Source: Piromyces finnis finn (taxonomy: Eukaryota > Fungi > Neocallimastigomycota). Taken from it: 64,000 bases of DNA. The notes below the pieces were generated by a model. That model was given only the letters and a program-made list of their open reading frames with translations. It ran no database searches and was not told the DNA's origin. Position numbers and translations under genes: made by a program. The DNA lies in assembly GCA_002104945.1 (NCBI GenBank), contig MCFH01000009.1, positions 558,001 through 622,000 on the forward strand. The letters run 5' to 3'. This document shows, one piece after another, positions 32,766-43,218 of the stretch. Numbering within the stretch: position 1 is the first letter of the stretch; each line of letters starts with the position of its first letter.

Positions 32766-33671
32766 ATTATTATATTTATATAAATTTGTTTTATTAATAA
32801 GTGTATTACGACTTAATTCTTACTTATTATCTTCTTTTATACCACGTTTATTTTCTATTTAGCATTTTATAAAATAAAGTTAAACATTATTAATAATAAT
32901 ATTTATAAAATTTCACAGTATTATTATAAAAAATTATAAAAATTACCCTAAAAATATATAGAATATGAAAATAATATGGGTATATTTAATTTTTTATACA
33001 TAGATTAAATACTTAAAAAAATAAATATAATTATTTAATATATACTTTGTTTTTAGAAATATATTTAGTTTTATATTCTTCAATGTCTTCTTCGCCAAAC
33101 GACTGAAGAACGTTCTTTTTAAAATTCGATAATTTTGCTATAACTTTTGCCATTTCATTCATTTTTTTATCACATTTATAAATATAACTTTCTAATTGTG
33201 TGATTTTTTGAGCATACTCTACAATTATATAATATTATTTAAATAATTTAAACAATAAATAACATCATTTAATAATTCTAATAGATATTATATTTTTAAA
33301 TATTAAAATATTAATATAAAAAAAAAAAAATACAAATTATAGTATTTAAATATATTTATATTAAAAAAACTTCATTCTAAAAACCTTTAATTTCATTTTG
33401 TTTTTGAATAAGCTCATTTCTCAATAAAATTACTTCAGAATCTTTTTCGGTTATCTTAAATATATATATATATATATTCAAAACAAAAATTTAAAAAAAA
33501 TTATTAGAATAATTCGGGAAAAAGTAAAGACTATAATAGTACAATAAAAATCTACTATTTTATTATATTATTTAATATTAATATTAAATATACCTTGTTA
33601 TTAAAAGCATTCCTAACTGCATTAACTGCATTCTCAAATTCTGATTCTAAATTTGCCGATGTTGTATTCAT
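32024..33671 (-). CDS. Uncharacterised coiled-coil protein resembling the Arabidopsis At4g15545 family; predicted 1-nt exon at 32947
   Basis: Coil ending KLSNFKKNVLQSFGEED. C-terminal domain IDGRDFFKLARSKLSYDQFTSLLSNVKAYNNRDQGKGKTLENIEIIFGETHHDLYKQFEKLL resembles the VDGKEFFRQVRSRLSYEQF...EIFG...LY..FE.LL motif I recall for that family. Confidence 0.75.
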
Positions 33672-38504: not shown

Positions 38505-39344
38505 TTTATATCGATACTTATTAAAAATTATTCAAATTATTATTATTTATTAAATACTTTTTATCGCTTATACAGTTACTATTGAATGAAAAGATTGAAC
38601 ATATATCTTCTAATTTTACTTTTATTAATTGAAATTTATTTTAAATAAATTCCTTCAAAATCAATTGTATATAATTAAATGAACATATAGTTATCCTGAT
38701 ATTCTATTATTTTTAATTATTTTTAATTTAATATTATTACTATTATTATTATTATTTTATATATTTCAACCCTTTCTTAATAATTTTATTACATTTTTTA
38801 ATCATAAGAGTTAATTATATTTTTATATGTTAAATAATATCTTTTAAAAAAACTTCATTGAAAAAAAAAAATAATAATAATAAATTATTATTATTTTTAT
38901 TATAACAATAAAAAATTAAAGATTATAAAAAAAAAAATAAATTCCTTATATATTAAACTTTGATTTAATTGGATAAATTATTGTATCTTTTTTTTTTAAA
39001 TCTAAATTAAATATAAATAAAATGTTAAGAAATAAACTTTAAATAAAAAATAAATAAATGCTTTTAATAAACTATATAATTAAATGAATGAATACAAATA
39101 GATAAATATCATTATAAAAAATAATACTATTTAAAAATACTTAATAATACTAAATTATTACTTTAACAGTTATAATAAAGTATTTATGTGAAATCGAAGA
39201 TAAATAAAAGCATATTAAAACATTTACTTATGGATTGGAAATATTATTATAATCAAAATTCGCAAACCAAATTAGAGGGAGAAATTTTATATACCTTCTT
39301 TAAATATTTAATAATATTATTACTTTATAACTCTTAAAATTAAA

Positions 39345-39350
<6 letters not shown>

Positions 39351-39426
<76 letters not shown>

Positions 39427-39435: not shown

Positions 39436-39694
39436 ATCAATTGTTAAATTATTTAATAAAAGTTTTAAATTGATATATTATTAAGAATTAAGATATTCTA
39501 ATTAGCATTTTTGTTTTGTTTTGTTTTTTTAATATTTTAATAAACGACATATTTATTATACACAATAAAATAATAAACTATATAAAAGTTTTCTTTTATC
39601 TTTAAATAATAGATATTAATAATTCTTATATTTATGAGTAATTAACTTAATTAGTTTATGTTTAATTTACAAAAATGAAGATTATTATTTTAAT

Positions 39695-40948
39695 TTAGAG
39701 ACCTTCATCTTCATGGTTACTTGTAAGGAATAACTTTGTATAGATTAAGAAAGAACAAAATATCATTAATCCACCAATTAGAGAAAGAATAGTAGATAAT
39801 AAATTAATCTAATTGAAAATAAATTTTAAAAAAATTCATTTACCCGTATTAGTTAGTAAGTACTATATTAATATACTACACCAATATTAAAAACTAATAA
39901 TTCAAAAATTATTCAAAAATTCATACCATATCTGAATGAAGTAAAACTAATGGAATAGCTATAATGAATTGAAATAAAAAATATATATTAATATTATATT
40001 AATATTAATATTAATAATTAAAATATATTTAATTCTATATAAAACCTAATTACTAACCGATACCGGTGACAAACAAAATACCAGTAATGAAATAACCATA
40101 TTCTCTAGTAGAACTGTTTTAAAAGAGTAAATATTCATGATAAATTAATATTATTTTAAAATTATATTATATTAATTATGGAGTAATTTAAATATTTTAC
40201 CTGACTTCATCATCTTCTTCAAATTCTCCTTTACTTCCACCAGATAACTTCTTTGCGATGAAATTTGGAATTGGTGCAATGAAATATGTCAAAATAACTA
40301 ACAAAGGCAAAAATTTACTATCAAAATTCAATAAAAAAAAACACAATAATATATTAAAATTTAAGCAAAAAAAAAAATTATATATATATATATTTTGTTG
40401 TTGTTGTTCTTACTTTTCACTTATAGATAATCATATATTATATATTGAAATTAAAAAAAAAAAAAGTTAATAAATAAATTATATTATTATTATTATTATA
40501 ATTATTATTATTATATACATACTTTAAATTGGTACATGATAAAATAACTAAAAGGACACCAACTGATAGCAAGGCAGCTAAACCAATAAGACTAAATAAT
40601 AATAAAAGTCATTTTTTAAATATATTTTTATATATAGCATTGATAAAACTTTATTAGAATATATGAATTATATATGTCTTTATAATATCTTAAAATATTT
40701 TCAAATTTCTTTTTTTATGTCATTTCTTATATATACACTATATTTTCTTAAAATCATTGCTGTTATTATTATTTGTATTAATAAAATATTATTCTGATAT
40801 ATAATTAATACTTACGCTATGAAAATAACATTTTCAATATATATAAATATTATATTATTATTGAACAATATTTGTTAATAAAAATGTTTAAAATTATTCT
40901 AAATTTAATTAAATTTGTCTTACCTGTAACACCTGAAATTCTTGCCAT
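39695..40948 (-). CDS. VPS55: Vps55/LEPROT-family endosomal membrane protein; predicted 1-nt exon at 40816
   Basis: MARISGVTALIGLAALLSVGVLLVILSCTNLNKFLPLLVILTYFIAPIPNFIAKK...YGYFITGILFVTGIAIPLVLLHSDMINLLSTILSLIGGLMIF. Confidence 0.9.
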
Positions 40949-43218
40949 TTTCTATATCTATTTATTCGTTTATTTATCTATATATCTATTAAATATTAAA
41001 TGATTAATATTTAAAATACTATTAATAATTAATCTTTTCTTAATTTGACCATTAATTTTTATATTATAACTATATTTAAAATTCTTTTTGAAATTATTCT
41101 TTACCTATATTTTTCTAAATAATTTTTTTTTTCAATTAATATTTGTAAATAGCCTTTATTTTCTAACTTAGTAAATTGGCTTTTTATTTTTTGTTTTATT
41201 AATATTTCTTCCTTTATATATATATGTTTGTTATTATTAAAAAAAAAAGTTTTCTTTTCCTTTATACTTTTCTTTATCTAATTAAAGTTAAAAAATTTTA
41301 AAAAAAAAAAAAAATTGAAATAATGGTTTTTTATTTTTTATATAGTATTTATTAATTATATTAATATTTAATTAAAACTAAATATAATTATAAAAAAAAA
41401 ATAAATTAATATATATAAAAATAAATTAATAAAAATAATAATAAATAGATATAAAAAGTAGCTACTAAAACATGGTAAATTATCAATATTTGACACTAAT
41501 ATATATTTATTAAAAACATGATTATTTATAAATTTAAATTAAATTTAATCAATAACCAAATTTGATATTTGTTACATAAGATTTTCCAACCATATTTTTT
41601 TTTTATAAAACTCTTTATTTAAAATTGAAGCATGACATTCATTAATTATCGATTATATTTTTTCAAAATTATTATAAATAGTATTATTTTATAATATTAT
41701 TCATTATATAATTATATTTATATTTAAAAAAAAAAAAACTTTTTTATAAACAATTAAAAATAAAGTTTAAATATTAACATTCTAATTATAACTCCTTAAT
41801 TAAATATTAATTTATAAGTACTATTATTAATTATTTGCCGATCCGAACAATTGGATACGGTAATTAAATTTATAATATTCTTAGTTTTTTTTTTAAAAAA
41901 AAAAATAATATTATGCAAAAAGATAGGCTAATAATTAATGAATTAATAATAAAACATATTGGTTTTTTATATATTAACTATTTATAAATAGTATTTTATA
42001 ATTAATTATAAGATAAATAAAAATTATTTATTAATAACCTAGTTAATAACACTATAATTGAAAAATATTTTAAATATTTTTCAATAAATAGATCAATTTC
42101 TTTCATAATTAAGTTTTATAACTACCATATTATATATTTATATAAATATGATAGAAAGTTTATGTTACACGAATAAAAAACTACTGATTAGAGCTCTAAA
42201 TTTCAATGCAATATTAATAATATCAGAAAAATATATTTAGTAATATAATTATAATTTATTATTATACGTTAATAATATACTTTCAAGGGAAAAAAAAATA
42301 TAAAATAGTTGGAAATTAAATTGTATTGTATGTAAAAATATGATATAATAAAAGCAGACTATTTTTTTAAAAAAAAAAAAAAAAAAGCCATAATAAAAAT
42401 ACAATTTTTTGAAATGTATTTTTTTATTATTCATTCATTTGAAAATAATCATTATATTCCCTAACCCTATAAATTGAAAAAAATTTACGGCATATTATTT
42501 TGTTAATTTAAAATGTATGTATATGAAAATCATTTTTTACAATTATATAATTTATATTATATACTATATTAAATAATATATAATAATATATTAGTTTTTT
42601 TTTTTTTTTTGTGCTACTAATTGTTTACTTTTACTATTATAATTAAAATATGAATGATACTTTAATAAATATTAAAAATGAAAAGGTTATGTTATATTAC
42701 AGAAAAATTAACTATTATAAACTTTACTAGAATACTATAATATTTTATTGAATTGGCTACCTTTAGTTTTCCTTATTTATTTTTTAGTAAAAAATAAAGT
42801 ATGCCTACTATTCTCTTTTAATATAAATATATCTTATTTCTAATAGTAATAAGTAAAAGCCAATTTTAGTAAAAATTCAACACCTTAATGTCCAATTTAC
42901 TGAAACTTTTATAAAAAAAATAGAAAAATAAATATAAAAATTACTAAAATACAACTATTGTATTTAATATAATTATAATATTTAACTAAGTCAAGATTAA
43001 TAAATAAAACTATGATAAAATCAATAATAATAGAACTATTTTTTAATAAAACTTTTTTATTTTTTTTAAGGGACAGGAATAAAATACAAAATCAAAGTAA
43101 TAAACTAACATATGTTACTTTATTATTTTTTTTTATATTAATTTTTAATACTTTTAAAAAAAAACTAGAAAAAAAAGAAAAAAAAGGAAAGAATAGAAAA
43201 AAATATAACTCATGATGT

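Follow-up and report, generated by a model that had tools for sequence, protein, structure and literature searches.

The VPS55 locus of Piromyces finnis

The window, i.e. the whole stretch of 64,000 nucleotides of P. finnis DNA that was analysed, carries the VPS55 gene on its minus strand. A piece of 4254 bases with the gene in it showed 100% identity to scaffold MCFH01000009.1 of the P. finnis assembly GCA_002104945.1. In the corrected gene model eight coding exons of 25, 1, 69, 6, 117, 56, 32 and 114 nt encode a protein of 139 residues (Table 1), and most of the first hydrophobic segment is contributed by exon 3. The boundaries of the intron in the 5' UTR were set by the GT..AG rule; the stretch used for the mapping of RNA contigs stopped at 41060. 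Loose contig ends at 40989 in the runs X2, X3 and X4 equalled the mRNA-sense sequence that ends at 41105. At the other end of the gene contig pieces showed that the 3' UTR continues to at least 39560. A long microsatellite, (TAA)n / (AAATAAAT)n, is located 3' of VPS55 at 39340-39420 and was kept out of read mapping.

Table 1. Features of VPS55 in P. finnis and the additional small exon of related genera. Slashes, here and in the text, mark exon borders.
Feature	Position	Strand	Length (nt)	Remarks
5' UTR intron	40986..41104	-	119	gtaaag..aatag; non-coding upstream exon ends at 41105
Coding exon 1	40924..40948	-	25	ATG GCA AGA ATT TCA GGT GTT ACA G; ends in phase 1, followed by gtaaga
Intron 1	40817..40923	-	107	gtaaga..catag; joint 40816 to 40924 with GT..AG ends (X3 record 8)
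Single-nucleotide exon C	40816	-	1	second base of codon 9, G-C-T (Ala); ttttcatag/C/gtaagt
Intron 2	40592..40815	-	224	gtaagt..atttag; perfect-consensus donor; missing from mature contigs
Coding exon 3	40523..40591	-	69	TCTTATTGG..TTAAA; contig pieces with 0 differences
Intron 3	40420..40522	-	103	gtatgt..ataag; inferred from six unplaced contig letters
6-nt exon	40414..40419	-	6	TGAAAA; contributes Glu-Asn (..NL N E N KFLP..)
Intron 4	40318..40413	-	96	gtaaga..gatag
Coding exon 5	40201..40317	-	117	sequence and contigs
Coding exon 6	40058..40113	-	56	joint 40113 to 40201 (X2, X3, X4)
Coding exon 7	39927..39958	-	32	joint 39958 to 40058
Last coding exon	39695..39808	-	114	TAA stop; joint 39808 to 39927
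13-nt exon (Anaeromyces, Neocallimastix)	L001:3305-3317; homologous places in L005 and L003		13	TCTTATYGGTTTA; follows the 1-nt exon

The product of the gene is Vps55, a small endosomal membrane protein of family PF04133 (Vps55 / LEPROT), for which family membership predicts a role in endosome-to-vacuole sorting. The public P. finnis model (P0001) matched the Pfam Vps55 profile with 112 bits at a cut-off of 24.6 and covered positions 1-116 of 120. Nine close relatives were found, PF04133 being recorded on all of them. The profile matches, including those of cDNA-derived relatives, scored 112-117 bits over positions 1-116/117 of 120 and started with the L of LIGL. An alignment with the Vps55 proteins of chytrids, Mucoromycota, yeast and Dikarya was collinear with 24 invariant columns, and I11 and L13 of the LIGL motif were invariant across the aligned fungal proteins. 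The sole internal difference near the N-terminus was an insertion of two residues, Glu-Asn. An alignment to yeast Vps55 without gaps around codon 9 had been part of the original prediction. It holds against fungal Vps55 proteins, among them that of Torulaspora globosa, which reads ..LTKIISLSGFLALGFLLVILSC... This is the same string as the original prediction gave for yeast; the protein in which it was found here is that of T. globosa.

A single-nucleotide exon between coding exons 1 and 3

Direct joining of exons 1 and 3 yields MARISGVTVLLV, and the frame is closed by a stop after 12 codons. If the C at 40816 is included, codon 9 is divided among three exons, the middle one being the C by itself, and the protein reads ..GVTALIGLAALLSVGVLLVILSC... 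The sequence bears out the features from which the one-base exon had been deduced, i.e. the phase-1 end of exon 1, the acceptor tttag/TCTTATT at 40591 and the stop upon direct joining, as well as the coordinates of the introns of 107 and 224 nt around the C. Within the 332-nt interval between exons 1 and 3 the motif AG-C-GT occurs at 40816 only. Shuffling of this interval and of its counterparts at the other loci produced AGCGT in roughly 2% of the shuffles, but AGCGTAAGT in no more than roughly 0.01%. Over the whole window YAGNGTAAGT was found once against an expectation of 0.36, which is not significant, so that the case for the exon is built on position, RNA and conservation. The other donors of VPS55, gtaaga, gtatgt, gtaaaa, gttagt and gtatga, are weaker than GTAAGT. 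Elsewhere in the window the motif ag/G/gtaatt at 32947 of the minus strand is a candidate for a second one-base exon.

Assembled RNA contigs were mapped on 39560-41060. Of the words sampled from the 6-kb neighbourhood about one fifth occurred in the four runs, a share that fits RNA made up of exons only; the runs had been classed as RNA provisionally, and their spliced contigs demonstrate that they are. X2, X3 and X4, which derive from two studies, were informative. Run X1 had only chance matches of 18-21 bases at the locus and is uninformative either way. The contigs of X2, X3 and X4 matched every exon with 0 differences, including the pieces of exon 1 at 40924-40989, and skipped each intron with GT..AG ends. 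In all three runs 40591 was joined to 40924 with exactly one letter in between, at depths of 61, 553 and 47, respectively. Contigs aligned to the minus strand (X2) and contigs aligned to the plus strand (X4) both gave this letter as G. Thus it is a plus-strand G, which corresponds to C in the mRNA. A G in mRNA sense is ruled out: with a genomic g on either flank, such a letter would have been absorbed by the aligner.

The position of the C was given by a partly spliced contig of X3 (record 8; 284 nt, depth 16.9). It joins 40924 to 40816, skips the 107 nt of intron 1 and continues unspliced down to 40562. Because the joint ends at 40816, the C is assigned to this base. We concluded that VPS55 of P. 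finnis contains a genuine single-nucleotide exon, as originally predicted. The claim is carried by the spliced contigs of three runs, by an Anaeromyces transcript and by the conservation of AG/C/GTAAGT in four gene lineages (see below). In the runs examined the C is constitutive in VPS55 mRNA, as judged from assembled contigs, in which minor isoforms that skip the C or use a downstream acceptor could be missed.

Order of intron removal

Taken together, our account of the locus is that the one-base exon C lies between two complete GT-AG introns, which are removed one after another, the upstream intron first in those molecules that are visible. We assign it a probability of about 0.93. Sequential splicing had been proposed from the DNA and has now gained some support by the X3 contig that lacks intron 1 and retains intron 2, together with a depth of 0 in the interior of intron 1.

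In the proposed mechanism each flanking intron would be recognised separately, i.e. by intron definition. As the AG of intron 1 and the GTAAGT of intron 2 are one base apart, U1 paired with this donor would mask the AG and two spliceosomes could not fit there together, which is why removal should be stepwise. Intron 1 would leave first to give exon 1-C/GTAAGT.., and intron 2 would be cut thereafter. The donor context AGC/GTAAGT is identical before and after removal of intron 1, so that no regeneration of the site would be needed. The perfect U1-complementarity of GTAAGT would probably compensate for the missing exon contacts. Its presence in four lineages, with weaker donors elsewhere in VPS55, fits such a compensation. 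Observed are the mRNA sequence, the place of the C, one partly spliced form and the conservation; that the two sites exclude each other sterically, that the strong donor matters and that the partly spliced form lies on the pathway is inferred.

The form that retains intron 2 reads GCG TAA, i.e. it runs into a stop codon. Seen in one contig of one run, it may be an intermediate or else a by-product that yields no protein. This opens a second reading in which the one-base exon is real and the two introns leave in no preferred order, the contig being a non-productive transcript. Such a reading draws on the complete signals of both introns and on their common donor context AGC/GTAAGT, by which neither removal depends on the other; furthermore, the evidence for an order amounts to one contig with 3% of the mature depth, and for the 9-nt exon of potato invertase, as far as it is treated in PMC4674806, the downstream intron was removed first. 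Against it stands X3 as the deepest run, where intron 2 was covered at a depth of 16.9 throughout versus a depth of 0 inside intron 1. We regard random order as less likely than removal of the upstream intron first.

Conservation in anaerobic gut fungi

The search for a conserved AG-N-GT in other Neocallimastigomycota, which had been recommended as a check of the prediction, turned up AG/C/GTAAGT at the locus of Anaeromyces robustus and at both of the Neocallimastix paralogues. At all of these loci exon 1 ends in phase 1 and is followed by intron 1, AG/C/GTAAGT, intron 2 and then TCTTATYGGTTTA. Intron 1 of the relatives measures 92-120 nt and intron 2 measures 301-655 nt. In Neocallimastix paralogue b exon 1 ends in A, which turns the codon into A-C-T (Thr). 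The ten bases TAGCGTAAGT form an invariant island in four lineages within an otherwise unalignable AT-rich intron, and the donor following the C is a perfect GTAAGT in four of four lineages.

At the RNA level, a transcript contig from Anaeromyces (L006; Logan, SRR9694920) equals the A. robustus locus L001 exactly in each of its exons, with only the C and TGAAAA left unplaced. It is RNA proof of the one-base exon in a second genus. The cDNA-derived relatives P0002-P0005 read ..GV(T/V/A)A-LIGLAALL.., and two metatranscriptome cDNAs carry the junction as G-C-T or G-C-C followed by CTTATTGG. The one-base exon is older than the divergence of Piromyces, Anaeromyces and Neocallimastix.

Some features of these loci lie apart from the exon in question. 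A. robustus is without the intron between the 56-nt and the 32-nt exon and has a single exon of 88 nt (L001:3896-3983). The Anaeromyces contig also has an intronless cation-efflux ORF (L006:1-1120) upstream of VPS55 and on the same strand; probably these are overlapping transcripts of neighbouring genes that were merged by the assembler.

The RNA and the relatives also bear on two explanations that do without a one-base exon. The first is a single intron of 346 nt that extends from 40923 to the acceptor ggtttag/CTGCC, with an exon starting at 40577 and a merely coincidental AG-C-GT. The acceptor is preceded by a good pyrimidine tract, and splicing would stay in frame for a product of 134 residues when the 6-nt exon is included, i.e. 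without the five residues LIGLA. Use of this acceptor (TTTAG/CTGCC) had been named as an outcome that would refute the prediction, and the contigs of X2, X3 and X4 were searched for it. The joint 40924 to 40577 was present in none of these three expressing runs, in contrast to 40924 to 40591 with one letter in between, which was present in all three. The product would also leave profile positions 1 to 5 of Pfam unmatched and would lack I11 and L13, i.e. residues that are conserved across fungi. In Anaeromyces and Neocallimastix the homologous spot is a donor, TTTA/gtaagt, and not an acceptor. We consider the single intron highly improbable as the main form.

An artefact behind the extra C, be it RNA editing, non-canonical splicing or a base that the assembly lacks where an exon ends, is just as hard to defend: a model free of micro-exons can be forced, and the public P. 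finnis model does stay in frame with Gly for Ala, but the partly spliced contig joins exon 1 to 40816 and matches the genome from there to 40562 across the edge 40592/40591, three more independent assemblies (A. robustus, N. californiae and N. lanati) have the identical AG/C/GTAAGT, and the extra letter cannot be a flanking genomic base, g on both sides, which the aligner would absorb. The missing genomic base was the other outcome that had been specified in advance as speaking against the exon. Across the exon edge the pre-mRNA contig and the genome assembly have the same sequence, which together with the three other assemblies makes a genome error at this place very unlikely.

Further micro-exons and the public gene models

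The contigs of X2 and X4 contained six letters between the pieces that border on 40523 and 40317; the observation is their number, and their identity is derived from the genome. The only AG-N6-GT in this interval is ctataag/TGAAAA/gtaaga (40419-40414). With the 6-nt exon the protein reads ..NLNENKFLP.., and the cDNAs of relatives read xENKFLP. All loci have kept the exon as TGAAAA, AGAAAA or GGAAAA. The Glu-Asn it adds is missing from all aligned Vps55 proteins outside Neocallimastigomycota. A model without the 6-nt exon was discarded; it is two residues short compared to the relatives. The gene model drawn from the DNA was thus right in its one-base exon, yet it had omitted this 6-nt exon between the second and the third large exon. 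A non-canonical exon extension, as implied by the public P. finnis model, was rejected as well, the missed 6-nt exon accounting for the two residues.

In Anaeromyces and Neocallimastix the one-base exon is followed by an exon of 13 nt and this in turn by an intron of 81-93 nt. Thus three introns fall within 14 coding bases. Piromyces has lost the intron after the 13-nt stretch.

The micro-exons have led public annotation astray. All four genome-annotation models of VPS55 (P0001, P0007, P0008 and P0009) are faulty at the micro-exons, so that the public Vps55 proteins of P. finnis, A. robustus, N. californiae and N. lanati are wrong. The P. finnis model has Gly for Ala at codon 9 and Asp-Ser for Glu-Asn, and that of A. 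robustus reads intron as coding sequence at the micro-exon site. In one N. lanati model a start was invented inside the intron, which results in a false N-terminus. The other N. lanati / N. californiae model has the next exon in the wrong frame, and its first membrane segment is frameshifted. The annotation of gut-fungal genomes, which are important in biotechnology, therefore needs methods that are aware of micro-exons.

Possible origin of the micro-exons

In three chytrids the first exon is uninterrupted through the region of the one-base exon. Their first intron, of phase 2, interrupts a codon for Asn or Gly at the very point at which AA/TGAAAA/T stands in P. finnis. With its location inside an intron position shared with chytrids, the 6-nt exon looks like a piece that was captured within an old intron and added Glu-Asn. 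The Umbelopsis model (L014) is partial at the N-terminus and was left out of the placement of introns.

For the one-base exon an outgroup intron was found in the basidiomycete Apiotrichum porosum. A phase-1 intron of 251 nt (L013:620-870) interrupts its VPS55 in the codon that aligns with G/C/T; this length seems long for a basidiomycete. The one-base exon lies one base away from this shared intron position. With a single outgroup, intron 1 could occupy an old position next to which intron 2 was added later, or else the recruitment of the C could have made up for the loss of one base, by analogy with the proposal of Nelson and Syed for a one-nucleotide exon of Fusarium (PMC12940212). The two positions hint at an origin of such exons either from AG..GT pieces captured within introns or from new introns gained right next to old ones. 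A more general view, that gut fungi have an unusually high density of exons of 1-3 nt which predate the split of the genera and that upstream-first removal at abutting splice sites is routine in them, is put forward tentatively and at somewhat less than even odds; VPS55 would in that case be a single verified example out of many.

Comparison with known systems

In stwintrons, as described by Flipphi, Fekete, Karaffa and co-workers, a donor, acceptor or branch signal of an external intron is interrupted by an internal intron, so that the external site comes into being with the first excision, and all of it is removed. Stwintrons share with VPS55 two consecutive splicing reactions at adjacent or overlapping sites of a fungal gene. 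Yet neither VPS55 intron interrupts a signal of the other and an exon base stays in the mRNA. With complete GT..AG ends of both introns in the DNA and one base left in the mRNA, the locus is not a stwintron, and the term stwintron-like in the original prediction is a loose analogy.

Zero-nucleotide recursive splicing has been reported for Drosophila and vertebrates (Hatton 1998, Burnette 2005, Duff 2015 and Sibley 2015, as cited in PMC4674806). A ratchet point resembles the VPS55 site by an AG beside a strong GTAAGT within a long non-coding interval, by the early exit of the upstream part and by splicing that resumes from the adjacent donor. At a ratchet point AG abuts GT, no base is kept and the exon junction regenerates the donor, whereas in VPS55 one base is retained and the donor is pre-existing. 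The VPS55 introns are short with 107 and 224 nt, hence subdividing a giant intron is not the purpose. In its working the site at 40816 resembles a ratchet point at which one base is kept, but it is not one.

The single-nucleotide exon of Arabidopsis APC11 was proven by mutagenesis (Guo and Liu 2015, PMC4674806). It is like that of VPS55 in being a constitutive coding exon of 1 nt with AG and GT flanks, within a stretch that had been annotated as one intron, and there, too, the public model was wrong. The proof for APC11 came from mutation of the base, that for VPS55 from RNA contigs and conservation. Intron definition and removal of the introns one after another were proposed by the APC11 authors, the order not having been observed (PMC4674806); VPS55 contributes one partly spliced form of the upstream-first type. 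Unlike the APC11 case, the exon of VPS55 is kept across genera and in paralogues.

Among fungi, a one-nucleotide exon of the type AG-G-GT is known from CYP621A of Fusarium, where it is conserved among orthologues and supported by SRA reads (Nelson and Syed 2026, PMC12940212), and a long-read annotation of Coprinopsis cinerea contains 13 one-nt exons (PMC12230235). Like VPS55 these are nuclear genes of fungi with 1-nt exons that annotation pipelines had missed. Fusarium and Coprinopsis belong to the Dikarya, in contrast to the host of VPS55, which is a member of the early-diverging and extremely AT-rich Neocallimastigomycota. The base in VPS55 is a C instead of the consensus-friendly G of Fusarium, and VPS55 also has a 6-nt exon and, in the relatives, a 13-nt exon, unlike the Fusarium and Coprinopsis cases. 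In the literature collection that was searched, no paper joined micro-exons with Neocallimastigomycota.

One-base exons have thus already been published for Arabidopsis, Fusarium and Coprinopsis, and VPS55 adds a well-supported case of a rare kind. What it adds is deep conservation, a cluster of exons of 1, 6 and 13 nt, four faulty public models and a natural partly spliced form, which bears on the order in which introns flanking a one-base exon are removed. If such exons were common in the gut fungi, splice-site recognition in the absence of exon contacts could be studied well in this phylum as a natural system.
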